Shown one piece after another: positions 15,893 through 64,000 of a DNA stretch of 64,000 nucleotides. The notes under the pieces are model-generated. The model was not told the origin of the DNA. It saw nothing but the letters and a program-made list of their open reading frames with translations, and did no database searches. Position 1 is the stretch's first letter. Each line of letters opens with the position of its first letter. Both the position numbers and the translations under genes were made by a program. The DNA is from Auanema rhodensis (taxonomy: Eukaryota; Animalia; Nematoda): NCBI GenBank assembly GCA_964057225.1, contig OZ059900.1, positions 5,642,001 to 5,706,000 on the forward strand, in the 5' to 3' direction.

Positions 15893-18800
15893 TTAGACAA
15901 TTCCTCCTGGTCCGGCAAGACGAGTACGACCCATCAAAGATTCGTCAACCTATTAATAATTCAGAAATTAATGAGTTATAAAGTTAGATTTCAATTACCT
16001 GACGTGCAGCTTGCCTTCCTTCATTGATGGCCCAAACAACAAGAGATTGTCCTCTGCGGCAATCACCAGCAGCAAATACCTTAATTTTTGAAAATTTTTC
16101 TATTTCACAAATTATAAAGTATACCTTAGGATGTACTGTGCTATATTTACCCTTCGGTGTTTCAATATTAGATCTTCCGTCTGTTTTAAGTTGTAATTGT
16201 TCGATGACCGTCTGCGATGATCATAAATAATATTGCGAATATACGATCAGTTATACTTACCTTTTCTGGGCCTACGAATCCCATAGCAAGAATAACAAGA
16301 TCACAATCTATGGTTTCTCCAGAGTTTGGTAATTCAATCAACTTCCAGCCACCACTTGCTGTTTTCTCCCACTCTACGTTCACGGTTTGCAGGCCTGTTA
16401 CAATTTTCTGTCCACTTGAGTTCATGGTGGAAACAAATTCCTGAATATCAATAACTTCAAAAAAAACTGAAGCACACACTGACTTTAGTTGAAATGGAAT
16501 AGGTTCTGGGGTCAGATCCTGTTTTTAATTTCATTTCTTCGTGTCCATAATCAACACGGAAAATGAGAGGCCACTCAGGCCATGGATTCTCTGTTTTTCT
16601 GCCAGTTCCGGGTTGTGGAAGAATTTCAAAAGCGCGAACTGATTTGGCTCCCTACATATGATAAAACATTACAATTATTTAACTAAGTTAGTGGTTTACC
16701 AGGCGAAGACTTGTAGCAATACAATCAGTAGCTGTATCACCTCCACCAAGAATAACTACCCGCTTATCTTTGGGGTCAAGACCTTCCCAAGGAAGTTGTT
16801 CCCCAGCTTGTTTTCTCTGACACTTTTCCAAGAACTCCATTGCGAAATAGATACCTTTAGCATCCCGACCGTTAACGGTGAGATCTCGAGGTGTGGTGGA
16901 ACCTGTGCAAACGAGAACAGCATCGTTCTCCTAAACAATGCATAAAAATAAGTTACATTGTTGTGCAATTATTAACCTTAAGTAGGAAATCGGCAGGAAG
17001 ATGTTTACCAATTTCAGTGTTTGTTAAAAATCGAACTCCTTCTTGCTCCAAAAGTTTCACACGACGATCAACAACAAATTTGTCCAATTTCATTGTGGGA
17101 ATACCATATCTATTGAATAATACTGTTCCCTGATAAAAGTTTTCTCACATACCTTAGTAAACCTCCAATTTGATTTTTTCGCTCATATACAACGATTGTG
17201 TGTCCTGCTTTGTTTAATTGAGCAGCAGCAGCCAAACCAGATGGTCCTGATCCGATAATAGCTATGCGTTTTCCCGTACGCTCAATTGCTGTGTTAGGCT
17301 TGATCCATCCGCGCATAAAGGCATAATCAATGATTGCACATTCAATTGATTTGATTGTTACTGCTTGAGATCCTATTCCAAGAGTACATGCACCCTAAAG
17401 CATAGTTATTGATTGACAAGTTCAGGACAAGTTTTGAAATCAGTAAACATACTTCACAAGGAGCAGGACACACACGGCCTGTAAATTCAGGAAAGTTATT
17501 GGTTTGTAACAGTTGCTCCAAAGCTTGTCTCCAATTTTTTTTGTATACACAATCATTCCATTTTGGAATAATATTTCCTAGAGGACAACCTGTATGACCT
17601 TGACAGAATGGTACACCACAATCCATGCATCTGTAATCGAATATTAATATGATTCTAACATATAAATAGTTACCTAGCAGCTTGTTCACGAATATTACTG
17701 CGAACAGCCTCGAAATCATAGACCTCATCCCAATCCTTGAGGCGCATTTCAGGATCACGATAAAGTTTCTTTTGTCTCTGGTATTTTACAAAACCGCGGA
17801 CTTTGTCATAATTTTGTTCTTGGTTTTTCAGGTGTGGTGGTAACGCTAAGTTCTCAATATCAAGTCCCATTTTTTGATTGAACTAGAAAATTAAAGGTAT
17901 GTTTAAGAAACTTTTCAATACACACATCCTGCTCTTCATCCTCGCTAATGTTTTCCTCTTCGTCGATATCTTCGTTTTCAGCCATATCAACAGCATCTAT
18001 TTCCGCATCAAATCCAACACTATCTTGTGGTCTTGGATGAGAGCGCACTGTGCGTAAGCTCTTCTGAACATAATAAAACACCATGCATGTTATTTAACAA
18101 CAAATACCTTCTTTTGACGAATTGGAGATAATTTAGTTCTATATCGTGATGATGGAGCTATTTGCATATCCATTGATAAACGACGTGTACGTGTAGGACT
18201 TGGAATGCCCTAAAATGATAAATACAATATGATTGAAAAAGTTTGAAATGCATACCTCTTTGGATTCATTTAATTGGGCTTTCTTTTCTTCTTCTACTAG
18301 GATACGTTTGTAATCAGTGGGGAACACTTTTACAACTTTAGTTTTGAAAGTATCCCAATTAGAAAGAATACGCTGTCCAAGTTCAGATTCAGTCAATTTT
18401 ACAAATTCTTCAATTTTGGAATAAACGAAATCTAAATCTTTGGCTGTTGGTTGATCCAAGTCTACTGTTGCTGAATTAATTCGGCGTGCAATATTCTCAT
18501 CTCTTAAACAATTAAGAATAATTTTTTTCTGTGAACAACCATAATAAACTAACTGTTTGAACAAATAAGCAATTCCACCACTCATTCCTGCGGCGAAGTT
18601 CTTTCCGATGGGGCCAAGAATAATTACACGTCCTCCAGTCATATATTCACAACCATGATCACCTACAGCTTCTACGACAGCTTGGCAACCAGAATTACGA
18701 ACAGCAAAACGTTCTCCAGCAACTCCACGGAACCATACTTCTCCTGATGTAGCTCCATATAATGCTACATTGCCAATGATTGAGTTTTCTTCTGACTTGA

Positions 18801-21800
18801 AAAGAGCTCCAGTCGAAGGACGGATAATAATACAACCACCAGAAAGCCCCTAAAAAGTATATGAAATATCCCACATCATGCTCGGAAAAACAACCTTTCC
18901 AACATAGTCGTTAGCATCTCCTTCTAATCGCACAGTTACTCCCTTAGCTAAGAAAGCACAAAATGATTGTCCTGCTGATCCATTAAGCTCAATAGTTATT
19001 GAACGGTTACCGGATAATCCTTCTTCATCGTAACGACGAGAAATCTATATAAAATTTTCAAAAATCTAAAGTCTTGTTAGTCACACCTCATAACTAATTC
19101 GAGCACCAAAAGCGCGATCAATATTTGTAATTGTTTTATTTGCAAACACTTTATGTTCTCCTTGTTCACTGAATACTCCATCTAAATTTTGAAGCAGTTC
19201 AGTTTCCAAAGGGCCCAGCTCTATTGTCTGAATAGAAAAATCATGTTATAATTCTCAGAAAATTATACGTAATTATCATTACGAATAAACATACCTGCTT
19301 AACACTTCCTCCTTTGGTAGAAACATCAGGGAAGAGGTGGCGAATATTTTTCAAAATTGAACCAAACTCGAGCATTGTTGCCTTTTTATTCACAGGGTTA
19401 GGATTAGCATACAAAAGATCTGTACGTCCAATTGCTTCATCCAATTTACGAAGTCCTAGTTTTGATAAGAAATACCGAACTTCTTCAGCAACCATGAACA
19501 TATAATTAACAACATGTTCTGGTTTGCCTTCAAATTTAGCACGGAGGACAGGATCCTGAGCATGAAGTTATAAAACCAGAGAACAAAACAAGTACCAAAC
19601 CTGGGTAGCAATTCCTACAGGACACGTATTTAAATGACATTTACGCATCATAATGCATCCCAACACAATCAGTGGAGCTGTGGACATTCCGAACTCATCA
19701 GCACCCAGCAAAGCAGCAATCATAACATCACGACCTAACAAGATGTTTGAAATTATTTCAGATAATATTAGGCATACCAGTTCGAATTTGACCATCAGCT
19801 TGTAATACAACTCGACTTCTCAGATTATTCATTGTAAGAACTTGATGAGTTTCAGCTACGCCTAATTCCCATGGTAGACCAGCGTGCTTAATTCCAGTCC
19901 AACTATAATAAAGCTGGTAATAAAGCTAAATACTTCATAAGCAACCTTGAAGCTCCAGTACCACCATCATGACCGGAGACGGTAATATGATCAGCATTTC
20001 CTTTTGCAACACCAGACGCAATAATACCAACTCCAGCTTCTGATACTAGTTTGACACTAACACGTGCTCGGGGGTTTGCACATTTCAAATCATAAATTAA
20101 CTGAAGTATAACATTAATAGAAATAAATTAAGAATGGAATACCTGAGCCAAATCTTCAATACTATAAATATCGTGATGAGGAGGTGGTGAAATCAAACCA
20201 ACACCAGCTGTTGATTTACGCGTCGAAGCAATATCAGGAGTAACTTTAAAACCAGGCAATTCACCACCCTCACCCGGCTTAGCACCTACAGATTTTAATA
20301 TAAATTCATAATGCTTCAGTTAAAATATACCTTGCGCCATCTTGATTTGTAATTCATCTGCGTTAGCCAAATATGAAGAAGTTACACCAAACCGAGCAGA
20401 CGCAACTTGTTTAATTGCAGAGCGTAAATTTTGGTTGGGATCTTGATTTTTGGCATATCTTTCAGGCTTTTCTCCTCCTTCTCCTGTGTTTGATTTTGCT
20501 CCTATGCGATTCATGGCAATTGCCAATGTGGTATGTGTCTCCCATGAAATAGATCCAAATGACATAGCACCTATATAATTTTATTATTAAAGATTGAGCG
20601 GGATGAAACAAACCCGTCACAAATCGTTTCACGATTTCACTTGCTGGCTCAACTTCCTCAATTGGAATTTGAATTTTATTACTAGTTTTGATCTCTAATT
20701 GTCCTCTCAACGAGCACATACGTTGAGCCAAATTTGATACTTCGGAATACTCGTGGAATGTTTTTGAGTTATTTTGACGCGTAGCAGCCTTAAAATTCCC
20801 GAGTAAAAACAATATAATTCGAAAATAGTAATTACCTGCAGTTTAGCAACCGCTTCAGGTTCATTGATGTGTTTTTCGCCTCCAGCTCTCCAGTGGTAAG
20901 TTCCGGTTGCTACCAATGTTCGAGAATCGCCTGTTGTTGTGTAAAAATTAAGTCACACTTCTGTCAGTATTTATTACCAGTCAGATGATTTCCTACAATA
21001 GCTGGATAGGAAGTTCGATGCCGCTTCAAGGCTTCACCAGCCAAAATTTCAAAAGTCGCACCGCCGAGACGAGAGACAGTGTTTTTGAAGCACATTTCAA
21101 CAACTTCTTGAGCCAAGCCGACAACTTCGAATATTTGAGCATGCTATAATAAATGCATATATACGAGAAGTCTGACAATTGACTGACTTTGTACGAGTGC
21201 AGAGTACTGATTCCCATTTTGGCCATAACCTTCAAGATACCGCGTTCTACTCCTTGGCGATATCCTTGGAAAACAAGATCATCATTCAATTCAGAATCGA
21301 CAAGCCCAAGATTTCTCAAACGATGCATAGTCTCAAAAACAACATAAGGGCAGATGGCATCGGCTCCAAAGCCGAGTAATACGCAAAGATCATGAACAAC
21401 GCGTGCTTCACCGGTTTCAACAAAAATAGCAACCTAAATGAAATAAATGCGGAGAATGGAAATAAAATAATCAAATAATGTACTTTGATACGTAAACGAT
21501 GTCTAATGAGGCATTGATGAATGGCTCCAACAGCCAGCAATGAAGGAATTGGGACATTTTCCTGCAATAAAATGTTTAATGCGAATTTTATTTATTAATT
21601 TTGAAGAAAAGAAAATATTCTTTTCAAATATATTGCAAACTCACCTGGTTAGCATTACGATCTGACAGCACAATTATGGGATAGCCATCAAGGGCAGCAG
21701 TGCATGCTTCGCAACAAATTCGATCTAAGCCTGGCATTAATCCTGCAAAATAGTTATTTTTGAATAATGCATCAAGTAATGCGTTAGGATACAAATGCAC

Positions 21801-46597: not shown

Positions 46598-47474
46598 GAC
46601 CTGTTGCGCATGAGCTGATAAAATGCCGTTTTTTTTCGAGTTAATAACTTTTCCTAAATCAGGATAAATGGAAACTTTGTTTTTCACCGAAGTTTTTGCG
46701 TGTGTATAAGTATACTTATCTATACATAATGTACCAAGTAGATGTGTGCACTGTCTAATCTAGAGAAATATCAATGCATATTATCCTTTTAAAATATTAC
46801 ATTTATTTTATCTAATACATAAGATTATGTATATTTCCCTAGTGATTGTTTCATATCTCATGGAGATATGGCATTTGCCAATATCCAAAGGAACCGTTTG
46901 AATTCCTTCAACTTTGACTATTTTTTGATTTTGATTCTGCCCAACAATGTATTCAGAGGCATGCTTATGAGAGAGAAAGGGAGTGAATAGTGCTTTTGCG
47001 TATAGAACAGTGTCTATTGCTTCTCTAGGCTCTCTGTATATTTAATTTGTTCCGGTATTTGAATCTGTGAACTTTATTTTTTTCTTCACTGTATGCTCTG
47101 ATCTGTATGATTTGACCCATAATCGCTGATGCGTCCTCTTTTAGACCATCCACAATAAATGTTATACAGTTAGCACTTTTGTCCCTATTCTGTAGTTCTA
47201 AAAAAGATAAGTTTTGGAAAGAAGTGCAAGCAAAATGATTTACAATGTGAAAATCATGCCTATTAATCCACTACCTACCTGTTGAACAATGAGTTCTTCT
47301 TATTGAAACCAACATTACTGCAAGACAATTGATATCAGTGATACAATAAGAGTTTCTTTATTATAACAAGAACAACAAGAAAACAAATATTAGCCTGAGG
47401 CCAAAACAAAATAAAAAGTCTTGTAGACTTATGCAAACATAAAACGTGCAACAAAAAGTTTTCAACTGATTCCA

Positions 47475-48045
47475 TCAACAATCACTCTTCCAAACACGAA
47501 TGGTCGTATAAGGTTCAAGTCCGCTGGTAACAATCGAATTTTCAGTTGGATGACAATCCATGGCTCCAATAACTTCTGAACAATAAACTATGCTCTTACA
47601 ATCGTAATAATCACAAGCCAACCAGACATTCCTGTGATAGCTTGTACCACATTTTGGCTTTCCATATCCCAAATCAAGAGTTTCTTATCTTCAGATCCAC
47701 ACATTATAAACTGAATGAATTCATGCAGCATGCAACAAAGCGTGCCTATTACCTGTCCTGATGTAAAAGAGAAGCAGCAGTCAAGTTTATATCCCTCGTT
47801 TTTATGTCCCTTGTAGAGTTTCAAACAATTTTCTTCTTGCCAATCCCATAATTTAATGAAACTAAATTTCATAAATAAAAAAGCAAACATCCAATAGAAA
47901 ACTTTACCCGTCAAACGTAGCTGACAAGATATATTTTCCATTAGGAGAGAATCTTGCAAAAGACACAGGATATGAATTACCGTCTGCAGTCATTAGGTAA
48001 GATAGATAAAAAATTACATAAACAACAATCCTGAGATCCGTCTGC
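47475..48045 (-). pseudogene. 3' part of WDR5-like copy A, cut by the palindromic insertion
   Basis: Matches 54272-54842, then breaks abruptly at 48046. Confidence 0.9.
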
Positions 48046-48143
48046 TTTGAGACTTGAGGTAGATGCTGGCTTGCTAGCTCCATTCCACGGATCGACCCGC
48101 TCTTGCACTGCTGGCGTGAACGGCCCATCCCCTTTGGGGGAGA
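48046..48143 (+). pseudogene. U2: U2 snRNA 3' fragment (end of Sm site, SL III, SL IV, 3' flank hairpin)
   Basis: GCTGG-CTTG-CTAGC, GGATCG...TTGCACTGCTG...CGGCCCA and TCCCC-TTTG-GGGGA align with the recalled 3' half of nematode U2. Confidence 0.75.
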
Positions 48144-48146
48144 ATA

Positions 48147-48303
48147 ATCGTTCCTATCAAAATAACCTTCGATATGTGTTCTATTGGATCACAATAAGGT
48201 TAACCGATTTTTGAGACTTGAGGTAGATGCTGGCTTGCTAGCTCCATCTCACGGGTCGACCCGATCACTGCTGTCGGGAACGGCCCATTCTCTTTGGGGG
48301 ACA
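48147..48303 (+). pseudogene. U2: 5'-truncated U2 snRNA (from ~nt 38-39), lacking the branch-point and U6-pairing region
   Basis: ATCGTTCCTATC..AACCTTCGATAT (stem IIa), AATAAGGTTAACCGATTTTTGAG (Sm site), CTTG tetraloop and GGGTCG/CGGCCC SL IV. No ATCGCTTCT or GTGTAGTA upstream. Confidence 0.8.
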
Positions 48304-48425
48304 ATAATCACTCTCATCGAAGTACCTTCAAAACGCGATGGTTAATGCTAATATCAGCAAACAAACATGATGCACTTTCTACTTCCACGTTCACAATTAT
48401 AACCGCAAAACTAAACTTTAACTTC

Positions 48426-48544
48426 GCTTACGACCATACCACGTTGAAAGTACGCCATCCCGTCCGATCTGGCAAGTCAAGCAACGTTGGGCCCGGTTAG
48501 TACTTGGATCGGAGACGGCTTGGGAATCCCGGGTGCCGTAAGCT
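48426..48544 (+). rRNA. 5S rRNA gene
   Basis: GCTTACGACCATACCACGTTGAAAG...GTTAGTACTTGGATCGGAGACGGCTTGGGAATCCCGGGTGCCGTAAGCT, 119 nt, followed by a T-run terminator. Confidence 0.97.
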
Positions 48545-48700
48545 TTTTCTATTTTCAGAAAAAAAAAGTTTCAGAAAATAATTATTGATAATCAGATATG
48601 TGCTCCATTGATACGCGGATTTTTTGATTATCACTGTCATTAATTCAAATGCCTTTGGCATATTATTGATTCATTATGATGCAAACCGAAAACATTTCAG

Positions 48701-48876
48701 GAAGCTGAAAACACTTTTGGCACAGCAACAGTGAGTTTTCTTTTTTTTCGTTGTAATCATCTGTTTTCAGTCGAACATTGTTTCAACGGTTCTAGCGATT
48801 CAGAATAGACATCTCGATTATTGCTGAAATTGATTTTTCTTTCTTATTTTCAAAAATTGTCTTGTTTTTCAATAAA
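48701..48876 (+). pseudogene. Captured 3' end of a spliced gene (exon 48701-48730, 40-nt intron, terminal exon, AATAAA); mirror at 52270-52445
   Basis: atttcag|30 nt|gtgagt...ttttcag|...TGA at 48827 and AATAAA at 48871. Spliced frame EAENTFGTATSNIVSTVLAIQNRHLDYC*. Confidence 0.5.
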
Positions 48877-49280
48877 TGTTTCATGTTATCTTTCATAGTT
48901 TTGTTTATTTTTACAAACAAAAGTAGTTTTGGTCTAACTATTCGAAAGAAGTTTGGTTTTTCAATTCTTTAACACTACACAACAATCTGCCAAGTCAGGG
49001 ATATCTTAGAAAAAATGAACAAGTAATCTGCCCCCATGTGGCATACGGTGCACAACTATGTGAGGTCAGGTTAATCGTTTAAGCAGAAAAATAAATTATA
49101 ACGGGCCTCTCAAGACCCTTTTATTCTAATTTTGAATTCTCACTATCTATTTAGTGAGGAAAATAAAAAGAATCTGATTCAGATAAGAGATTCATTCCAA
49201 CATGAATCACAATATAGAAACCGTATTCTCTTTAGTTCCTTATTGATTTTTGCTCTGTTATATATTGTTTTTTAACATCA

Positions 49281-51865
49281 AATAGTATAACATCTTGGTG
49301 TAATGGTTGTGTTTCAGGTTAGTTGATAAACTCTCCTTGGATCAGATCCTCTCCAGGTAAGTTACAAAAATAAAAATATTCACAACTCTCTCTCTCTCTC
49401 TCTCCATCTCTCTCTGTCTATCTCTCCCTCAAAACCACACTCCATTGCAATATGTCCTTCCTACTTCATCATGTATTCTCCCTATATATTCTGAATACCT
49501 TATATCAGCTTCACAATCCTTGATTCTGGTGTAAACAACGATTTGCTCCATTTTGCAGTTAATTATCGTACTTATCACCTGATGTATGAGAATTAAACAA
49601 TAACAATATGAACATAGTGGTCTAGTGGTCCGAGTATTGGACTGCATTCTACACGGGCAAGTACAATCCCTTTCTGCGTTTTTTAAGAAAATCGATAGCA
49701 TATCGAAAATCCAAAAAACGCTCGGATGGATTTTGAACAAGGAAAAGTGTTTATTTTGGTATTTGAAAGCTGATATCTCTGTTTAAACTCAATATTTTTG
49801 AATTTTAATTAAGTCTTTCTGTAGTTCTGAATCACTGCTTCTCGCTTACAAAGATTTCAACTACTTTCTCGTTTGGTTCGAAAGTTAAAGCTTCATGAAT
49901 ATGAGACATGAAGCCTAAAGTTAGACTTTGAACTGCTCTATCTCTTTAACTATAAAGAATTTCAACAATTTTCGATCGGATTCACAATCTACGTACTGAG
50001 ATCTATCGAATGAACTGTCTATATTGAAGTTTGGAGCACTTTGAAATTTTGAAAATTATTGAAATTAGCTATTTTCAGGTTTGAGAAATAAAAATATTGC
50101 GTTTTCTAACTTTTAACTAGCTCAGACGATAGAGTTGAACATGCTGTTTTCAAATTTAAAAATGCCGATTTTCAATTTTCGCTTCTGAAGGAGTTATGAG
50201 ACTTTAAAGTTGTTGACGTTGAGTATTCAGAAGGATATATCTCCGTTCAGACAAATTTTCAGGAATTCGCAATTAGCAGATTCTACTTCTACGAGTTTGA
50301 TTTACCTATGTAATGAATTTCGAAAGTTTTGCTCGAAATTTTTGGTTTTTGATGAAATGATCCCATTCCATATACTCCCCCCTTACCTACTTTTCGACCA
50401 AAAACATCCGTCACCCCAGAAACATTTTGAAAATTTCTATTTTTTTTTGTTAATTATATGATATTATCTATAACAAATTAAAGTTTTATAGACGAAACAA
50501 CGTTAAGGTTGCTATTCTTATACTTGGAATCTTAGTTTCTCATTATATTCTCCTTTGAACATCAAAACGAGATTGCCCATACATTAGAAGATGAAACAAG
50601 GATAATCTTGGAATATATATCTGAGTTCATATCACATAGTTAACTATGACATATAAATAACGTCAAAAACTATAATTATCTAAAACTCTTCTGAAACTAT
50701 GAAAGTAAAAAAAACTTCAGAGTAGACGGTTTATCGATCGATTTTCATTGAAAAAATAGGTAAGGGGGGAGTATATGGAATGGGATGATTTCTTCAATAA
50801 CAAAAAATTTCGAGCAAAACCTTCGAAATTCATTACATAGGTAAATCAAACTCGTAGAAGTAGAATCTGCTAATTGCGAATTCCTGAAAATTTGTCTGAA
50901 CGGAGATATATCCTTCTGAATACTCAACGTCAACAACTTTAAAGTCTCATAACTCCTTCAGAAGCGAAAATTGAAAATCGGCATTTTTAAATTTGAAAAC
51001 AGCATGTTCAACTCTATCGTCTGAGCTAGTTAAAAGTTAGAAAACGCAATATTTTTATTTCTCAAACCTGAAAATAGCTAATTTCAATAATTTTCAAAAT
51101 TTCAAAGTGCTCCAAACTTCAATATAGACAGTTCATTCGATAGATCTCAGTACGTAGATTGTGAATCCGATCGAAAATTGTTGAAATTCTTTATAGTTAA
51201 AGAGATAGAGCAGTTCAAAGTCTAACTTTAGGCTTCATGTCTCATATTCATGAAGCTTTAACTTTCAAACCAAACGAGAAAGTAGTTGAAATCTTTGTAA
51301 ACGAGAAGCAGTGATTCAGAACTACAGAAAGACTTAATTAAAATTCAAAAATATTGAGTTTAAACAGAGATATCAGCTTTCAAATACCAAAATAAACACT
51401 TTTCCTTGTTCAAAATCCATCCGAGCGTTTTTTGGATTTTCGATATGCTATCGATTTTCTTAAAAAACGCAGAAAGGGATTGTACTTGCCCGTGTAGAAT
51501 GCAGTCCAATACTCGGACCACTAGACCACTATGTTCATATTGTTATTGTTTAATTCTCATACATCAGGTGATAAGTACGATAATTAACTGCAAAATGGAG
51601 CAAATCGTTGTTTACACCAGAATCAAGGATTGTGAAGCTGATATAAGGTATTCAGAATATATAGGGAGAATACATGATGAAGTAGGAAGGACATATTGCA
51701 ATGGAGTGTGGTTTTGAGGGAGAGATAGACAGAGAGAGATGGAGAGAGAGAGAGAGAGAGTTGTGAATATTTTTATTTTTGTAACTTACCTGGAGAGGAT
51801 CTGATCCAAGGAGAGTTTATCAACTAACCTGAAACACAACCATTACACCAAGATGTTATACTATT
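49281..51865. mobile_element. Foldback core of the same family as 12561-15192, with two tRNA-like modules and a (CT)n tract per arm
   Basis: Colinear shared blocks: AATAGTATA.CATCTTGGTGTA, TTTTTTAAGAAAATC, TTTGAGAAATAAAAAT, AGGAGTTATGAGACTTTA, GTATTCAGAAGG and CCCCTTACCTACTTTT. A boxes TGGTGTAATGG (49296) and TGGTCTAGTGG (49618). Confidence 0.85.
49386..49430. repeat. (CT)n microsatellite (mirror (AG)n at ~51716-51760)
   Basis: Direct reading. Confidence 0.9.
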
Positions 51866-52601
51866 TGATGTTAAAAAACAATATATAACAGAGCAAAAAT
51901 CAATAAGGAACTAAAGAGAATACGGTTTCTATATTGTGATTCATGTTGGAATGAATCTCTTATCTGAATCAGATTCTTTTTATTTTCCTCACTAAATAGA
52001 TAGTGAGAATTCAAAATTAGAATAAAAGGGTCTTGAGAGGCCCGTTATAATTTATTTTTCTGCTTAAACGATTAACCTGACCTCACATAGTTGTGCACCG
52101 TATGCCACATGGGGGCAGATTACTTGTTCATTTTTTCTAAGATATCCCTGACTTGGCAGATTGTTGTGTAGTGTTAAAGAATTGAAAAACCAAACTTCTT
52201 TCGAATAGTTAGACCAAAACTACTTTTGTTTGTAAAAATAAACAAAACTATGAAAGATAACATGAAACATTTATTGAAAAACAAGACAATTTTTGAAAAT
52301 AAGAAAGAAAAATCAATTTCAGCAATAATCGAGATGTCTATTCTGAATCGCTAGAACCGTTGAAACAATGTTCGACTGAAAACAGATGATTACAACGAAA
52401 AAAAAGAAAACTCACTGTTGCTGTGCCAAAAGTGTTTTCAGCTTCCTGAAATGTTTTCGGTTTGCATCATAATGAATCAATAATATGCCAAAGGCATTTG
52501 AATTAATGACAGTGATAATCAAAAAATCCGCGTATCAATGGAGCACATATCTGATTATCAATAATTATTTTCTGAAACTTTTTTTTTCTGAAAATAGAAA
52601 A

Positions 52602-52720
52602 AGCTTACGGCACCCGGGATTCCCAAGCCGTCTCCGATCCAAGTACTAACCGGGCCCAACGTTGCTTGACTTGCCAGATCGGACGGGATGGCGTACTTTC
52701 AACGTGGTATGGTCGTAAGC
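52602..52720 (-). rRNA. 5S rRNA gene (mirror copy)
   Basis: Reverse complement of 48426-48544. Confidence 0.97.
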
Positions 52721-52842
52721 GAAGTTAAAGTTTAGTTTTGCGGTTATAATTGTGAACGTGGAAGTAGAAAGTGCATCATGTTTGTTTGCTGATATTAGCA
52801 TTAACCATCGCGTTTTGAAGGTACTTCGATGAGAGTGATTAT

Positions 52843-53138
52843 TGTCCCCCAAAGAGAATGGGCCGTTCCCGACAGCAGTGATCGGGTCGACCCGTGAGAT
52901 GGAGCTAGCAAGCCAGCATCTACCTCAAGTCTCAAAAATCGGTTAACCTTATTGTGATCCAATAGAACACATATCGAAGGTTATTTTGATAGGAACGATT
53001 ATTCTCCCCCAAAGGGGATGGGCCGTTCACGCCAGCAGTGCAAGAGCGGGTCGATCCGTGGAATGGAGCTAGCAAGCCAGCATCTACCTCAAGTCTCAAA
53101 AATCAATTAACCTTATTGTGAACCAATGGAACACATAT
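52843..53138 (-). pseudogene. U2: Two tandem 5'-truncated U2 snRNA copies (52843-52999, 53003-53138)
   Basis: Mirror of 48046-48303. The outer copy extends 38 bp further, through the Sm site and stem IIb. Confidence 0.8.
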
Positions 53139-53317
53139 CAGCAGCATTCAAATTCTGAACAGCTTACGACATAAGATAAAACATCTAAAGTAAAATAGTC
53201 TTACTGAGCTTTCAGAACAGTTCAGATTAATTTTCTTTGCTGCCACAGAAGAAAGATGTGGTGCATTTGAATCCTAAATCATCAAACGGTGAAAATATCT
53301 GAATAAGTTTATACCAT
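53139..53317 (-). pseudogene. 5' part of WDR5-like copy A (ATG at 53317)
   Basis: Matches 55901-56079. Confidence 0.88.
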
Positions 53318-54271
53318 TTTAAAAAACGTTTGTGATGTTAATTTGAGTGAGAAATGTAAACCTGAAAAGAAAAAAAATAGGTTTGGAATAATGAAAATAA
53401 AATTATTTCCCATAAGCTAATTGTATAGAATAGTTTGCAAGTTATTTAAGTATTCACAACATATAAAACGTTTACCTATCCAAACAGAATAAACTAAACA
53501 GCAACATGTCATAGAAATACCAAGTATTACATAAATGAATATTAGGATGTACAATCATATCCGATCCTACACGCTGAGAAAACCCAATGAAACCAACAAT
53601 ATCATTACTTCCGCCATGTTACAACAATCAGTTATCTCATAAACAAAATAAAATTATGTTCTCCTCAAAAGAAATTGGAAAACAAAGTATACTAACCTAT
53701 AGCTATGATGACATTTAAAATATTAAGAAAATCAATAATTATCTAGAAAAAAACAATAAATATTCAAATATTCAAATTTTCGAAATGTACAGAATATTGG
53801 CACTGGACCACATATTCCTAACTAACAATGTTTAAAAAATTAATTGATTAAACAAAGAGGAAAAAAATGTGGAAGACAGATTACAAACATCTCAATGCGG
53901 AGAAAATAACGGAAACATAACAGGATGACTGTAGCAGACAGTATATACCCATTTGTCTGCATATTTTACCATCTACAGTCGTAAAACAGACAATCTTGAT
54001 AAAGCTTGAAGAATCCCAAAAGGGTTTGTTCAAATACGAAATATTTTTTTTGAAATTTACAGAAAGGTTAGTTGTAAAATAAAGTACAGATAATCTTGGA
54101 TGAAACCAACATTACTACAAGACAATTGATATCAGTGATACAATAAGAGTTTCTTTATTATAACAAGAACAACAAGAAAACAAATATTAGCCTGAGGCCA
54201 AAACAAAATAAAAAGTCTTGTAGACTTATGCAAACATAAAACGTGCAACAAAAAGTTTTCAACTGATTCCA

Positions 54272-56079
54272 TCAACAATCACTCTTCCAAACACGAATGG
54301 TCGTATAAGGTTCAAGTCCGCTGGTAACAATCGAATTTTCAGTTGGATGACAATCCATGGCTCCAATAACTTCTGAACAATAAACTATGCTCTTACAATC
54401 GTAATAATCACAAGCCAACCAGACATTCCTGTGATAGCTTGTACCACATTTTGGCTTTCCATATCCCAAATCAAGAGTTTCTTATCTTCAGATCCACACA
54501 TTATAAACTGAATGAATTCATGCAGCATGCAACAAAGCGTGCCTATTACCTGTCCTGATGTAAAAGAGAAGCAGCAGTCAAGTTTATATCCCTCGTTTTT
54601 ATGTCCCTTGTAGAGTTTCAAACAATTTTCTTCTTGCCAATCCCATAATTTAATGAAACTAAATTTCATAAATAAAAAAGCAAACATCCAATAGAAAACT
54701 TTACCCGTCAAACGTAGCTGACAAGATATATTTTCCATTAGGAGAGAATCTTGCAAAAGACACAGGATATGAATTACCGTCTGCAGTCATTAGGTAAGAT
54801 AGATAAAAAATTACATAAACAACAATCCTGAGATCCGTCTGCAATTATCGACTTTACACATAAGCGAGTATTGGAATTCCAAATACGGATCAATCCATCG
54901 TAAGCAGCAGTGCAGAAGTGAGTTCCATCACTGCAAATCAAAACAGTTTCACAAGCAACAAAACTAAAACTCACAAATTGAAATAAACAGCTGATACAAA
55001 ACCACAATGAGCATCTAACTGATGGAGACACAGTCCTGTGTTAACACTCCAAACACGTACAGTACCATCAATTGAGCCTGATATAACAAGCTTGCAAACA
55101 AAAGATTATGTCTAAAACAGCCAAACCTGATAAAGCTAACTTTGACTGCGGACACAAACTACAGCACAAAGCTTTCTGTTCATGTCCTTCAAAAACGCGA
55201 ATACACTTGCCGGACAATTGCTCCCAGAGCTTAAAAACGAAAAATTACAAGAATTTTCAATGTTAAATACCCTGCAAGTGCAATCGTCTGATGCTGAAAA
55301 CAACAACTTATCGTCCGAGCTCCACACAAGATCATTAACTCCTAATTTATGACCAGACATCTGGATAAAAATATTGTACCACCATATATATGCTTACGAA
55401 CCGTTTTCATAACTGCGCCGTTTATATAATTCCAAATTTTAATCATGCTATCGGAGGAAGCGGACGCAATGAAACTACCACAGTATGAGAACTTAACCGC
55501 ATTTACTGCTCTAGTGTGGCCATTCAAAGCAATGAATTCAACATAGTTCGGGCTTTTCTTTTTTTCGACCTAGAACGAATGAAAACTGTTTTTCGTTCTA
55601 ATGATAACACATTTCCTAACCTCTAAGTTATCATTCCTAGAATTCGCAGTTCTTTCCATCATCTCTTCATACACTTCATTACATTCCATTTCTTCAGGTA
55701 TAATGATGAATTCCTCCATAATATCATCGTCATCCTGTAATAAACAGTTTAAATTTGCAATTTCGAGAAAGAAACCTCATCGATAAGGTGAGATTCTTCT
55801 GATTTTGTGCAAGATAGCAAATTCGCTGTATTACTTTCACTCTTACTGTTGTTCTGAGAACTAAAATCTGAATGGAAGCCAGATTCCTTGTTTTCAGCAT
55901 CAGCAGCATTCAAATTCTGAACAGCTTACGACATAAGATAAAACATCTAAAGTAAAATAGTCTTACTGAGCTTTCAGAACAGTTCAGATTAATTTTCTTT
56001 GCTGCCACAGAAGAAAGATGTGGTGCATTTGAATCCTAAATTATCAAACGGTGAAAATATCTGAATAAGTTTATACCAT
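54272..56079 (-). CDS. wdr-5: WDR5-like WD40 protein, copy B
   Basis: Spliced sequence contains SPNY..LNGHTRAVNAVKFS..IASASSDSMIKIW, GHKLGVNDLVWSSD, SASDD, PVSFARFSPNGKYIL, GHKNEGY, GSED and C-terminal WKSDC, colinear with WDR5. Acidic N-terminal extension; the first coding exon is ATG only. Confidence 0.88.
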
Positions 56080-57034
56080 TTTAAAAAACGTTTGTGATGT
56101 TAATTTGAGTGAGAAATGTAAACCTGAAAAGAAAAAAAATAGGTTTGGAATAATGAAAATAAAATTATTCCCCATAAGCTAATTGTATAGAATAGTTTGC
56201 AAGTTATTTAAGTATTCACAACATATAAAACGTTTACCTATCCAAACAGAATAAACTAAACAGCAACATGTCATAGAAATACCAAGTATTACATAAATGA
56301 ATATTAGGATGTACAATCATATCCGATCCTACACGCTGAGAAAACCCAATGAAACCAACAATATCATTACTTCCGCCATGTTACAACAATCAGTTATCTC
56401 ATAAACAAAATAAAATTATGTTCTCCTCAAAAGAAAATTGGAAAACAAAGTATACTAACCTATAGCTATGATGACATTTAAAATATTAAGAAAATCAATA
56501 ATTATTTAGAAAAAAACAATAAATATTCAAATATTCAAATTTTCGAAATGTCCAGAATATTGGCACTGGACCACATATTCCTAATTAACAATGTTTAAAA
56601 AATTAATTAATTAAACAAAGAGGAAAAAAATGTGGAAGACAGATGACAAACATCTCAATGCGGAGAAAATAACGGAAACATAACAGGATGACTGTAGCAG
56701 ACAGTATATACCCATTTGTCTGCATATTTTACCATCTACAGTCGTAAAACAGACAATCTTGATAAAGCTTGAAGAATCCCAAAAGGGTTTGTTCAAATAC
56801 GAAATATTTTTTTTGAAATTTACAGAAAGGTTAGTTGTAAAATAAAGTACAGATAATCTTGGATGAAACCAACATTACTACAAGACAATTGATATCAGTG
56901 ATACAATAAGAGTTTCTTTATTATAACAAGAACAACAAGAAAACAAATATTAGCCTGAGGCCAAAACAAAATAAAAAGTCTTGTAGACTTATGCAAACAT
57001 AAAACGTGCAACAAAAAGTTTTCAACTGATTCCA

Positions 57035-58842
57035 TCAACAATCACTCTTCCAAACACGAATGGTCGTATAAGGTTCAAGTCCGCTGGTAACAATCGAATT
57101 TTCAGTTGGATGACAATCCATGGCTCCAATAACTTCTGAACAATAAACTATGCTCTTACAATCGTAATAATCACAAGCCAACCAGACATTCCTGTGATAG
57201 CTTGTACCACATTTTGGCTTTCCATATCCCAAATCAAGAGTTTCTTATCTTCAGATCCACACATTATAAACTGAATGAATTCATGCAGCATGCAACAAAG
57301 CGTGCCTATTACCTGTCCTGATGTAAAAGAGAAGCAGCAGTCAAGTTTATATCCCTCGTTTTTATGTCCCTTGTAGAGTTTCAAACAATTTTCTTCTTGC
57401 CAATCCCATAATTTAATGAAACTAAATTTCATAAATAAAAAAGCAAACATCCAATAGAAAACTTTACCCGTCAAACGTAGCTGACAAGATATATTTTCCA
57501 TTAGGAGAGAATCTTGCAAAAGACACAGGATATGAATTACCGTCTGCAGTCATTAGGTAAGATAGATAAAAAATTACATAAACAACAATCCTGAGATCCG
57601 TCTGCAATTATCGACTTTACACATAAGCGAGTATTGGAATTCCAAATACGGATCAATCCATCGTAAGCAGCAGTGCAGAAGTGAGTTCCATCACTGCAAA
57701 TCAAAACAGTTTCACAAGCAACAAAACTAAAACTCACAAATTGAAATAAACAGCTGATACAAAACCACAATGAGCATCTAACTGATGGAGACACAGCCCT
57801 GTGTTAACACTCCAAACACGTACAGTACCATCAATTGAGCCTGATATAACAAGCTTGCAAACAAAAGATTATGTCTAAAACAGCCAAACCTGATAAAGCT
57901 AACTTTGACTGCGGACACAAACTACAGCACAAAGCTTTCTGTTCATGTCCTTCAAAAACGCGAATACACTTGCCGGACAATTGCTCCCAGAGCTTAAAAA
58001 CGAAAAATTACAAGAATTTTCAATGTTAAATACCCTGCAAGTGCAATCGTCTGATGCTGAAAACAACAACTTATCGTCCGAGCTCCACACAAGATCATTA
58101 ACTCCTAATTTATGACCAGACATCTGGATAAAAATATTGTACCACCATATATATGCTTACGAACCGTTTTCATAACTGCGCCGTTTATATAATTCCAAAT
58201 TTTAATCATGCTATCGGAGGAAGCGGACGCAATGAAACTACCACAGTATGAGAACTTAACCGCATTTACTGCTCTAGTGTGGCCATTCAAAGCAATGAAT
58301 TCAACATAGTTCGGGCTTTTCTTTTTTTCGACCTAGAACGAATGAAAACTGTTTTTCGTTTTAATGATAACACATTTCCTAACCTCTAAGTTATCATTCC
58401 TAGAAATCGCAGTTCTTTCCATCATCTCTTCATACACTTCATTACATTCCATTTCTTCAGGTATAATGATGAATTCCTCCATAATATCATCGTCATCCTG
58501 TAATAAACAGTTTAAATTTGCAATTTCGAGAAAGAAACCTCATCGATAAGGTGAGATTCTTCTGATTTTGTGCAAGATAGCAAATTCGCTGTATTACTTT
58601 CACTCTTACTGTTGTTCTGAGAACTAAAATCTGAATGGAAGCCAGATTCCTTGTTTTCAGCATCAGCAGCATTCAAATTCTGAACAGCTTACGACATAAG
58701 ATAAAACATCTAAAGTAAAATAGTCTTACTGAGCTTTCAGAACAGTTCAGATTAATTTTCTTTGCTGCCACAGAAGAAAGATGTGGTGCATTTGAATCCT
58801 AAATCATCAAACGGTGAAAATATCTGAATAAGTTTATACCAT
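57035..58842 (-). CDS. wdr-5: WDR5-like WD40 protein, copy C
   Basis: Near-identical to copy B, with one N>I change in the N-terminal extension. Confidence 0.88.
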
Positions 58843-59798
58843 TTTAAAAAACGTTTGTGATGTTAATTTGAGTGAGAAATGTAAACCTGAAAAGAAAAAA
58901 AAATAGGTTTGGAATAATGAAAATAAAATTATTTCCCATAAGCTAATTGTATAGAATAGTTTGCAAGTTATTTAAGTATTCACAACATATAAAACGTTTA
59001 CCTATCCAAACAGAATAAACTAAACAGCAACATGTCATAGAAATACCAAGTATTACATAAATGAATATTAGGATGTACAATCATATCCGATCCTACACGC
59101 TGAGAAAACCCAATGAAACCAACAATATCATTACTTCCGCCATGTTACAACAATCAGTTATCTCATAAACAAAATAAAATTATGTTCTCCTCAAAAGAAA
59201 ATTGGAAAACAAAGTATACTAACCTATAGCTATGATGACATTTAAAATATTAAGAAAATCAATAATTATTTAGAAAAAAACAATAAATATTCAAATATTC
59301 AAATTTTCGAAATGTCCAGAATATTGGCACTGGACCACATATTCCTAATTAACAATGTTTAAAAAATTAATTAATTAAACAAAGAGGAAAAAAATGTGGA
59401 AGACAGATGACAAACATCTCAATGCGGAGAAAATAACGGAAACATAACAGGATGACTGTAGCAGACAGTATATACCCATTTGTCTGCATATTTTACCATC
59501 TACAGTCGTAAAACAGACAATCTTGATAAAGCTTGAAGAATCCCAGAAGGGTTTGTTCAAATACGAAATATTTTTTTTGAAATTTACAGAAAGGTTAGTT
59601 GTAAAATAAAGTACAGATAATCTTGGATGAAACCAACATTACTACAAGACAATTGATATCAGTGATACAATAAGAGTTTCTTTATTATAACAAGAACAAC
59701 AAGAAAACAAATATTAGCCTGAGGCCAAAACAAAATAAAAAGTCTTGTAGACTTATGCAAACATAAAACGTGCAACAAAAAGTTTTCAACTGATTCCA

Positions 59799-61606
59799 TC
59801 AACAATCACTCTTCCAAACACGAATGGTCGTATAAGGTTCAAGTCCGCTGGTAACAATCGAATTTTCAGTTGGATGACAATCCATGGCTCCAATAACTTC
59901 TGAACAATAAACTATGCTCTTACAATCGTAATAATCACAAGCCAACCAGACATTCCTGTGATAGCTTGTACCACATTTTGGCTTTCCATATCCCAAATCA
60001 AGAGTTTCTTATCTTCAGATCCACACATTATAAACTGAATGAATTCATGCAGCATGCAACAAAGCGTGCCTATTACCTGTCCTGATGTAAAAGAGAAGCA
60101 GCAGTCAAGTTTATATCCCTCGTTTTTATGTCCCTTGTAGAGTTTCAAACAATTTTCTTCTTGCCAATCCCATAATTTAATGAAACTAAATTTCATAAAT
60201 AAAAAAGCAAACATCCAATAGAAAACTTTACCCGTCAAACGTAGCTGACAAGATATATTTTCCATTAGGAGAGAATCTTGCAAAAGACACAGGATATGAA
60301 TTACCGTCTGCAGTCATTAGGTAAGATAGATAAAAAATTACATAAACAACAATCCTGAGATCCGTCTGCAATTATCGACTTTACACATAAGCGAGTATTG
60401 GAATTCCAAATACGGATCAATCCATCGTAAGCAGCAGTGCAGAAGTGAGTTCCATCACTGCAAATCAAAACAGTTTCACAAGCAACAAAACTAAAACTCA
60501 CAAATTGAAATAAACAGCTGATACAAAACCACAATGAGCATCTAACTGATGGAGACACAGCCCTGTGTTAACACTCCAAACACGTACAGTACCATCAATT
60601 GAGCCTGATATAACAAGCTTGCAAACAAAAGATTATGTCTAAAACAGCCAAACCTGATAAAGCTAACTTTGACTGCGGACACAAACTACAGCACAAAGCT
60701 TTCTGTTCATGTCCTTCAAAAACGCGAATACACTTGCCGGACAATTGCTCCCAGAGCTTAAAAACGAAAAATTACAAGAATTTTCAATGTTAAATACCCT
60801 GCAAGTGCAATCGTCTGATGCTGAAAACAACAACTTATCGTCCGAGCTCCACACAAGATCATTAACTCCTAATTTATGACCAGACATCTGGATAAAAATA
60901 TTGTACCACCATATATATGCTTACGAACCGTTTTCATAACTGCGCCGTTTATATAATTCCAAATTTTAATCATGCTATCGGAGGAAGCGGACGCAATGAA
61001 ACTACCACAGTATGAGAACTTAACCGCATTTACTGCTCTAGTGTGGCCATTCAAAGCAATGAATTCAACATAGTTCGGGCTTTTCTTTTTTTCGACCTAG
61101 AACGAATGAAAACTGTTTTTCGTTCTAATGATAACACATTTCCTAACCTCTAAGTTATCATTCCTAGAATTCGCAGTTCTTTCCATCATCTCTTCATACA
61201 CTTCATTACATTCCATTTCTTCAGGTATAATGATGAATTCCTCCATAATATCATCGTCATCCTGTAATAAACAGTTTAAATTTGCAATTTCGAGAAAGAA
61301 ACCTCATCGATAAGGTGAGATTCTTCTGATTTTGTGCAAGATAGCAAATTCGCTGTATTACTTTCACTCTTACTGTTGTTCTGAGAACTAAAATCTGAAT
61401 GGAAGCCAGATTCCTTGTTTTCAGCATCAGCAGCATTCAAATTCTGAACAGCTTACGACATAAGATAAAACATCTAAAGTAAAATAGTCTTACTGAGCTT
61501 TCAGAACAGTTCAGATTAATTTTCTTTGCTGCCACAGAAGAAAGATGTGGTGCATTTGAATCCTAAATTATCAAACGGTGAAAATATCTGAATAAGTTTA
61601 TACCAT
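59799..61606 (-). CDS. wdr-5: WDR5-like WD40 protein, copy D
   Basis: Near-identical to copy B. Confidence 0.88.
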
Positions 61607-62561
61607 TTTAAAAAACGTTTGTGATGTTAATTTGAGTGAGAAATGTAAACCTGAAAAGAAAAAAAATAGGTTTGGAATAATGAAAATAAAATTATTCCCC
61701 ATAAGCTAATTGTATAGAATAGTTTGCAAGTTATTTAAGTATTCACAACATATAAAACGTTTACCTATCCAAACAGAATAAACTAAACAGCAACATGTCA
61801 TAGAAATACCAAGTATTACATAAATGAATATTAGGATGTACAATCATATCCGATCCTACACGCTGAGAAAACCCAATGAAACCAACAATATCATTACTTC
61901 CGCCATGTTACAACAATCAGTTATCTCATAAACAAAATAAAATTATGTTCTCCTCAAAAGAAAATTGGAAAACAAAGTATACTAACCTATAGCTATGATG
62001 ACATTTAAAATATTAAGAAAATCAATAATTATTTAGAAAAAAACAATAAATATTCAAATATTCAAATTTTCGAAATGTCCAGAATATTGGCACTGGACCA
62101 CATATTCCTAATTAACAATGTTTAAAAAATTAATTAATTAAACAAAGAGGAAAAAAATGTGGAAGACAGATGACAAACATCTCAATGCGGAGAAAATAAC
62201 GGAAACATAACAGGATGACTGTAGCAGACAGTATATACCCATTTGTCTGCATATTTTACCATCTACAGTCGTAAAACAGACAATCTTGATAAAGCTTGAA
62301 GAATCCCAGAAGGGTTTGTTCAAATACGAAATATTTTTTTTGAAATTTACAGAAAGGTTAGTTGTAAAATAAAGTACAGATAATCTTGGATGAAACCAAC
62401 ATTACTACAAGACAATTGATATCAGTGATACAATAAGAGTTTCTTTATTATAACAAGAACAACAAGAAAACAAATATTAGCCTGAGGCCAAAACAAAATA
62501 AAAAGTCTTGTAGACTTATGCAAACATAAAACGTGCAACAAAAAGTTTTCAACTGATTCCA

Positions 62562-64000
62562 TCAACAATCACTCTTCCAAACACGAATGGTCGTATAAGG
62601 TTCAAGTCCGCTGGTAACAATCGAATTTTCAGTTGGATGACAATCCATGGCTCCAATAACTTCTGAACAATAAACTATGCTCTTACAATCGTAATAATCA
62701 CAAGCCAACCAGACATTCCTGTGATAGCTTGTACCACATTTTGGCTTTCCATATCCCAAATCAAGAGTTTCTTATCTTCAGATCCACACATTATAAACTG
62801 AATGAATTCATGCAGCATGCAACAAAGCGTGCCTATTACCTGTCCTGATGTAAAAGAGAAGCAGCAGTCAAGTTTATATCCCTCGTTTTTATGTCCCTTG
62901 TAGAGTTTCAAACAATTTTCTTCTTGCCAATCCCATAATTTAATGAAACTAAATTTCATAAATAAAAAAGCAAACATCCAATAGAAAACTTTACCCGTCA
63001 AACGTAGCTGACAAGATATATTTTCCATTAGGAGAGAATCTTGCAAAAGACACAGGATATGAATTACCGTCTGCAGTCATTAGGTAAGATAGATAAAAAA
63101 TTACATAAACAACAATCCTGAGATCCGTCTGCAATTATCGACTTTACACATAAGCGAGTATTGGAATTCCAAATACGGATCAATCCATCGTAAGCAGCAG
63201 TGCAGAAGTGAGTTCCATCACTGCAAATCAAAACAGTTTCACAAGCAACAAAACTAAAACTCACAAATTGAAATAAACAGCTGATACAAAACCACAATGA
63301 GCATCTAACTGATGGAGACACAGCCCTGTGTTAACACTCCAAACACGTACAGTACCATCAATTGAGCCTGATATAACAAGCTTGCAAACAAAAGATTATG
63401 TCTAAAACAGCCAAACCTGATAAAGCTAACTTTGACTGCGGACACAAACTACAGCACAAAGCTTTCTGTTCATGTCCTTCAAAAACGCGAATACACTTGC
63501 CGGACAATTGCTCCCAGAGCTTAAAAACGAAAAATTACAAGAATTTTCAATGTTAAATACCCTGCAAGTGCAATCGTCTGATGCTGAAAACAACAACTTA
63601 TCGTCCGAGCTCCACACAAGATCATTAACTCCTAATTTATGACCAGACATCTGGATAAAAATATTGTACCACCATATATATGCTTACGAACCGTTTTCAT
63701 AACTGCGCCGTTTATATAATTCCAAATTTTAATCATGCTATCGGAGGAAGCGGACGCAATGAAACTACCACAGTATGAGAACTTAACCGCATTTACTGCT
63801 CTAGTGTGGCCATTCAAAGCAATGAATTCAACATAGTTCGGGCTTTTCTTTTTTTCGACCTAGAACGAATGAAAACTGTTTTTCGTTCTAATGATAACAC
63901 ATTTCCTAACCTCTAAGTTATCATTCCTAGAATTCGCAGTTCTTTCCATCATCTCTTCATACACTTCATTACATTCCATTTCTTCAGGTATAATGATGAA
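62562..64000 (-). CDS. wdr-5: WDR5-like WD40 protein, copy E (5' end lies beyond the window)
   Basis: Near-identical to copy B up to the window edge. Confidence 0.85.

Follow-up and report, generated by a model that had tools for sequence, protein, structure and literature searches.

What becomes of a chromatin adaptor when the residues that line its docking sites are replaced? WDR5 is among the most conserved of these adaptors, and both of its docking sites, the arginine-binding WIN pocket and the WBM cleft, are drug targets; to our knowledge, these sites show almost no variation between yeast and human. A 64-kb stretch of the genome of the nematode Auanema rhodensis (the whole of which is referred to below as the window) carries a WDR5-like gene whose product differs from human WDR5 at both sites. 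We asked whether this gene is an intact member of the family and what its propeller may still be able to bind. The answer that we consider probable is that it is a real and intact gene of the WDR5 family that was amplified recently and evolves fast, in which the propeller has been kept, both docking surfaces have drifted, and the protein acts outside COMPASS. The protein belongs to a known family, of which it is an unusual variant.

Gene structure

The initial annotation had placed the gene at 54272-56079. These coordinates were borne out, with the gene on the minus strand, by a direct reading of the sequence, by a scripted gene model, and by exon-wise matches to PDB and Pfam entries. In the resulting model of the first intact copy (copy 1), the start codon is the ATG at 56079-56077, the stop codon is the TGA at 54274-54272, and 13 coding exons join into 423 codons without an internal stop. 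The respective features are as follows.

54272..56079, minus strand: WDR5-like gene copy 1, from ATG to stop
56079-56077, 56035-55967, 55916-55776, 55734-55621, 55569-55402, minus strand: coding exons 1 to 5 of copy 1
55360-55271, 55229-55127, 55077-54975, 54930-54824, minus strand: coding exons 6 to 9 of copy 1
54780-54705, 54658-54550, 54507-54420, 54372-54272, minus strand: coding exons 10 to 13 of copy 1
56124..56130, minus strand: TTTTCAG, candidate trans-splice or 5' untranslated region (UTR) acceptor, proposed from the sequence and the nematode acceptor consensus

All 12 introns are of the GT-AG type and 41 to 51 bp long, with a length of exactly 41 bp in four of them. Exon 1 consists of the ATG alone (56079-56077), with a GT donor directly after it and a 41-bp intron (window positions 56036-56079). 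This ATG-only exon was chosen because the frame of exon 2 is closed upstream by a TAG in its own acceptor, which leaves a sole in-frame start; the start codon shown here is a predicted one. The TTTTCAG at 56130-56124, which lies 44 nt upstream of the ATG, is a possible trans-splice or 5' UTR acceptor. The start-site motif TRCAACCG is absent from the whole 64-kb window. Three candidate GT donors are found at the end of exon 9 (window positions 54813-54830); they would end the exon at 54824, 54821, or 54815, all in the same phase, with an intron of 43, 40, or 34 bp and a change in the protein of 0, 1, or 3 loop residues, respectively. The model uses the first of these donors (54824; 43-bp intron).

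The window as a whole is AT-rich eukaryotic DNA (~31% G+C). Its other contents include a glutamate synthase (GOGAT)-like housekeeping gene with long open exons, on the minus strand at 17342-20812, some 27 kb from the array of WDR5-like genes described below.

Relationship to WDR5

The product of copy 1 is a seven-blade WD40 propeller that can be followed exon by exon along residues 27 to 334 of human WDR5. The exon pieces were searched singly against the PDB sequences, with the full-length human WDR5 chain 2xl2_A as the reference, and nine in-frame pieces mapped onto human WDR5 ungapped and in order.

Exon 5: human WDR5 residues 32-82
Exon 6: human WDR5 residues 83-111
Exon 7: human WDR5 residues 113-145
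Exon 8: human WDR5 residues 148-180
Exon 9: human WDR5 residues 182-213
Exon 10: human WDR5 residues 214-235
Exon 11: human WDR5 residues 238-271
Exon 12: human WDR5 residues 274-299
Exon 13: human WDR5 residues 306-334

The sole length difference from human WDR5 is an insert of ~6 amino acids between residues 213 and 214. For the exon 13 piece (CHPTEN ... WKSDC), all 46 of the 46 matches in the whole PDB with E values of ≤0.001 are WDR5 or Wds chains. The Pfam family PF25175 (Beta-prop_WDR5) matches each WD exon, collinearly and over profile positions 5 to 296, with scores of 36.4, 31.5, 24.8, 28.8, 20.5, 25.3, 29.1, 14.6, and 17.9 bits. It is the best specific family for 7 of the 9 exon pieces; in exon 12, its 14.6 bits tie with the 15.1 bits of the WDR3 model, and in exon 5, it comes second to the generic WD40 repeat model. 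The scores of the nine separate pieces sum to 228.9 bits, compared to a curated gathering cutoff of 250 bits; the joined protein would probably score somewhat above that sum. Every blade retains its WD signature, and the identity to human WDR5 is estimated at ~50% over 303 positions by a hand count.

Chance resemblance to WDR5 can be dismissed on account of the exon 13 matches, which are exclusively to WDR5 and Wds, and of the collinear matches to PF25175. Judging from its sequence, the protein plainly belongs with WDR5 but is strongly diverged, and the earlier statement that the scaffold and the WKSDC end are kept is confirmed by both the exon-wise PDB mapping and the exon 13 match.

Further searches with exon pieces, which are too short to reach full-length relatives, carry no information on orthology. 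An exhaustive protein search with the longest exon (56 amino acids) retrieved only very long multi-WD40 proteins, whose repeats sum up, and a look-up of exon 5 in the ESM Atlas gave generic WD40 clusters only. Word-index searches with exon 5 and with an exon 11-intron-exon 12 read-through yielded no candidate under a length window and a 5-residue word rule that exclude full-length relatives; likewise, exon 5 retrieved no relative from a metagenome scan, a single-exon query being uninformative with respect to full-length ones. Coatomer, which came up as the best PDB match of the read-through, was rejected as being due to intron-derived residues, and the clean exons were used instead.

The WIN pocket

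In WDR5, F133 and F263 hold the arginine via cation-pi contacts, main-chain hydrogen bonds come from S91, F133, S175, and C261, and Y131 and F149 form the next subpocket (pocket 2); the F133A/F263A replacement abolishes WIN binding (PMC11094138). The WIN pocket has also been listed as A65, S91, D107, F133, Y191, Y260, and F263 (PMC10880924).

A residue table scripted from the exon offsets shows the substitutions S91N, Y131K, F133L, F149I, C261K, and F263D relative to human WDR5. These are all six of the replacements listed in the initial annotation, exactly as stated there, and the HMMER alignments print HSNYVFCC versus HEQKALCC and EKYCIF versus EGYKLD directly. Three further changes, S49N, A65S, and I305G, were not in that list, and seven pocket residues (A47, D107, S175, Y191, S218, Y260, and L321) are kept. 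In these counts, A47, S49, S218, and L321, as well as K250, K272, and L288 in the WBM cleft, are what we take to be the human residues. The aromatic arginine sandwich of F133 and F263 is thus gone, as had been claimed, along with Y131, F149, and C261; among the residues by which the WIN pocket of the WDR5 family is recognized, A65, S91, F133, F263, Y131, F149, and C261 are changed and D107, Y191, and Y260 are kept. Canonical binding of a WIN arginine by this protein is unlikely, given that the aromatic cage is gone and that a Lys and an Asp would lie inside the channel. Asp263 could still pair with an arginine, and hence some binding of a basic peptide or of a new basic ligand could persist.

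Two elements of the earlier description have to be toned down. First, S91N does not count as a remodeling of the pocket: C. elegans WDR-5.3 has N at this position, and WDR-5.1 also lacks the Ser. Second, to call the pocket "rebuilt" is an overstatement, as 9 of its 16 positions are changed versus about half of all propeller positions by hand count, i.e., an approximately equal share. Since the share of changed positions is no higher in the pocket than across the entire propeller, directional selection on the pocket is not indicated, and the pattern looks like a loss of the WDR5-type constraint, not a focused redesign.

Nematode paralogues

For the comparison with C. elegans, we used a machine-read version of the published alignment of human WDR5 with CeWDR-5.1, CeWDR-5.2, and CeWDR-5.3, which contains some reading errors (PMC4027197 supplement). 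At position 91, WDR-5.3 reads GIND and WDR-5.1 reads GVDN in the machine-read text (PMC4027197). On this alignment, nematode proteins normally carry a residue other than Ser at position 91. Such a residue need not disable the WIN site, given that H3K4 methylation is supported by WDR-5.1. The stretch of WDR-5.1 at this position is presumably GVND. WDR-5.2 has a natural Ala at position 263, and the C. elegans proteins carry Leu or Met at position 305 (PMC4027197), so a partial erosion of the WIN pocket has a C. elegans precedent. Of Y131, F133, F149, C261, and F263, none is altered in WDR-5.1 or WDR-5.3, and F263 alone is altered in WDR-5.2.

These observations bear on the main alternative, namely, that the Auanema gene is an orthologue of C. 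elegans wdr-5.2 or wdr-5.3 and belongs to an old lineage outside H3K4 methylation, for which the state of its pocket is ordinary. Of the three WDR5 homologues in C. elegans, two are dispensable for H3K4 methylation; the replacement of S91 in the C. elegans paralogues and the A263 of WDR-5.2 would fit such an origin, as would several short motifs that resemble WDR-5.3 in a hand comparison with the machine-read alignment (KFSYCG, TVRVW, TGLC, GLEP, and L262). However, WDR-5.1, WDR-5.2, and WDR-5.3 all retain Y131, F133, F149, C261, A65, V268, and Q289, and every one of these residues is changed here (PMC4027197 alignment). In addition, blade 1 is closer by hand count to human WDR5 (25 of 50 positions identical) than to WDR-5.1 (18 of 50) or WDR-5.3 (17 of 50), and the hand comparison with the C. 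elegans paralogues reveals no clear affinity to any of them. We regard orthology with wdr-5.2 or wdr-5.3 as possible, with a probability well short of even. The initial annotation had made its interpretation depend on the protein not grouping with a family in which the altered residues are normal: the comparison of aligned residues bears this out halfway, in that the protein matches no C. elegans paralogue of this kind.

The WBM cleft

The partners of the second docking site, the WBM cleft, are RbBP5, MYC, and KANSL2. This site is changed by V268F, K272Q, L288M, and Q289E, and N225, Y228, L240, K250, and F266 are kept. With respect to the published pocket list of N225, Y228, L240, F266, V268, and Q289 (PMC10880924), four of the six residues are retained, V268F and Q289E being the changes. 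N225A, L240K, V268E, and Q289E serve as RbBP5-binding mutants (PMC7024586), and binding of the RbBP5 type by the Auanema protein is doubtful in view of its Q289E and V268F substitutions.

The state of this cleft also weakens the idea, raised in the initial annotation, that the protein is a decoy, which would bind only one of its COMPASS partners and titrate the subunits, amplification of the gene strengthening the titration. The scaffold and the four WBM residues N225, Y228, L240, and F266 would permit this, and a high gene dosage suits a stoichiometric inhibitor, but a decoy needs one intact docking site, and both are damaged here (F133L, F263D, C261K, Y131K, and F149I in the WIN pocket; V268F and Q289E in the WBM cleft), with Q289E alone breaking RbBP5 binding in laboratory use (PMC7024586). 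A decoy function is therefore unlikely.

The acidic N-terminal tail

The propeller is preceded by an N-terminal tail of 114 amino acids with a pI of 4.3, which contains 27 D and E residues versus 10 K and R residues and includes the acidic-hydrophobic stretch IDEDDDDIMEEFIIIPEEMECNEVYEEMMER.

55570..56079, minus strand: most of the coding sequence of the N-terminal tail, an open spliced frame of ~108 codons in AT-rich DNA

The final five residues of the tail, VEKKK, are encoded by the first codons of the exon that follows (55569-55555). The acidic tail noted in the initial annotation is real as an open, spliced frame. Two tail exons had no match in Pfam. The tail was also considered as a built-in ligand that would act through an Arg-based WIN motif or an acidic-IDV WBM motif; this was dropped, as neither motif is evident in the tail.

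A tandem array of WDR5-like genes

A repeat search and a blastn comparison of the unit with the window show that the WDR5-like gene is repeated head to tail, as the unit of an array whose period is 2762 to 2764 bp. Within the window, the array comprises three full intact copies, a fourth copy that reaches the window end, and a broken first copy.

54101..56863, strand not assigned: tandem unit 1, 2763 bp, consisting of the gene and a spacer of ~955 bp (repeat search, blastn)
57035..58842, minus strand: copy 2 (unit 56864-59627), intact, 423 amino acids
59799..61606, minus strand: copy 3 (unit 59628-62390), intact, protein identical to that of copy 1
62562..64000, minus strand: copy 4 (unit from 62391), ending at the window edge
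47304..48045, minus strand: 3' piece of the first copy, which is broken (1-742 of the unit; blastn, 99.9% identity)
53137..54100, minus strand: 5' piece of the same broken copy (1799-2763 of the unit; blastn, junction sequences)
48046..53136, strand not assigned: 5.1-kb insert replacing exons 3 to 9 of the first copy (Rfam gathering-level matches; sharp junctions)

The full units are 99.7 to 99.9% identical, and the copies differ at 2 to 6 of 2763 positions, which points to a very recent amplification. All complete copies retain the 423 open codons and 24 splice signals. A single amino acid differs among them: copy 2 carries N102I in its acidic tail (at 58406, corresponding to 55643 in copy 1), and the sole other coding difference is synonymous. 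Copy 4 has 9 of its 13 exons inside the window, with 1 nucleotide difference in their 945 coding nucleotides.

Of the broken copy, the 3' piece (47304-48045) retains 19 nt from the end of exon 9, exons 10 to 13, and the 3' flank, and the 5' piece (53137-54100) retains the spacer, exons 1 and 2, and 18 nt from the beginning of exon 3. Over 964 bp, the 5' piece departs from unit 1 (55899-56863) at 7 positions, which fall in the spacer or intron 1 and leave the coding sequence unaffected; it is more diverged than the intact units are among themselves, which suggests that it no longer joins in their homogenization. The 5.1-kb insert that separates the two pieces is a palindrome with imperfectly symmetric ends (~36 extra nucleotides on the right) and carries, according to Rfam, an inverted pair of 5S rRNA genes (48426-48544, plus strand, and 52602-52720, minus strand) and an inverted pair of U2 snRNA genes (48122-48293, plus strand, and 52853-53024, minus strand). 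Repeats abound in this region.

Repeats of 2.8 kb that are nearly identical are notoriously hard to assemble, and the copy number of the array rests on one assembly. The array might accordingly be an assembly artifact, or the copies might be young duplicates of a decaying gene that has no function; the broken first copy, the repeat-rich surroundings, and a 1-bp difference between copies in a homopolymer run (at 56131) would be in line with one or the other. On the opposite side, there are variants common to subsets of the copies (at 56042, 56170, 56782, and 55034), which are more readily explained by separate, genuine copies than by random errors of assembly, as well as the stable period and the full set of open codons and splice signals in each complete copy. 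Furthermore, divergence of ~50% from WDR5 with zero stops or frameshifts implies long purifying selection on the fold. We consider artifact and decay, taken together, improbable. The gene has been, as judged from a fold that was kept through this divergence and from the WD signature in every blade, under selection as a protein.

Proposed function and significance

The reading that we prefer is that of an intact family member with drifted docking surfaces, for which we infer a loss of partner binding, a function outside COMPASS, and gene dosage as the cause of the amplification. In the WIN pocket, the Phe pair that sandwiches the guanidinium has given way to Leu and Asp, C261 to Lys, and the hydrophobic subpocket of Y131 and F149 to Lys and Ile. 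The protein would then offer no canonical docking to the WIN motif of SET1/MLL or to H3R2, would bind RbBP5 poorly, and would serve as a propeller scaffold for other partners outside COMPASS, possibly aided by its acidic tail. The 2763-bp unit would have been multiplied very recently by unequal exchange, and this multiplication would result in a higher gene dosage.

A more elaborate scenario, in which the gene encodes a germline chromatin adaptor engaged in genetic conflict, with its channel (Asp263, Lys261, and Lys131) switched to a new peptide ligand, its acidic-hydrophobic tail folding back on, or competing for, the altered WBM cleft, and its copy number raised by dosage selection, seems very unlikely to us. 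If true, it would place that dosage selection in, e.g., unusual sex-chromosome segregation or germline-restricted DNA, both of which have been reported for Auanema-type worms.

Under the preferred reading of drifted docking surfaces on a retained fold, the gene is a natural, intact, multicopy relative of WDR5. It could reveal uses of the WDR5 scaffold without COMPASS, complementing the poorly understood WDR-5.2 and WDR-5.3 of C. elegans, and it supplies natural replacements at positions of WDR5 that are targets of laboratory mutagenesis. That an entire chromatin gene was amplified so recently hints at dosage selection, in a lineage with unusual germline genetics.

Comparison with known systems

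Human WDR5 and Drosophila Wds, the canonical adaptors of COMPASS, NSL, and MYC, share with the Auanema protein the same seven blades, which run collinearly between residue 32 and the terminal WKSDC, along with CHPTEN, FSPNGKYIL, D107, Y191, Y260, N225, Y228, L240, and F266, and nearly all exons have them as their best family in the PDB. The differences from human WDR5, at ~50% identity by hand count, consist of S49N, A65S, Y131K, F133L, F149I, C261K, F263D, and I305G in the WIN pocket; V268F, K272Q, L288M, and Q289E in the WBM cleft; a 114-amino-acid acidic tail in place of a short one; the insert of ~6 amino acids after residue 213; and the tandem amplification of the gene.

The engineered WDR5 variants F133A/F263A and Q289E/V268E are altered at the same positions that have changed naturally in the Auanema protein. 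The natural replacements are F133L and F263D, not Ala, and V268F, not Glu, so that the effect of the engineered ones is not directly transferable.

WDR-5.3 (ZC302.2), the most diverged C. elegans paralogue, with 52% "homology" to WDR-5.1, resembles the Auanema protein in having N at position 91 and L at position 262; no role in H3K4 methylation has been detected for WDR-5.3. In contrast to the Auanema protein, WDR-5.3 keeps the F133/F263 sandwich, Y131, F149, C261, and Q289.

C. elegans WDR-5.2 (K04G11.4) keeps Y131, F133, F149, C261, V268, and Q289, unlike the protein described here, and we know of no amplification of its gene. The likeness lies in its naturally degraded WIN pocket (A263) and would extend to its mode of action: H3K4 methylation does not require WDR-5.2, which works separately from SET/MLL.
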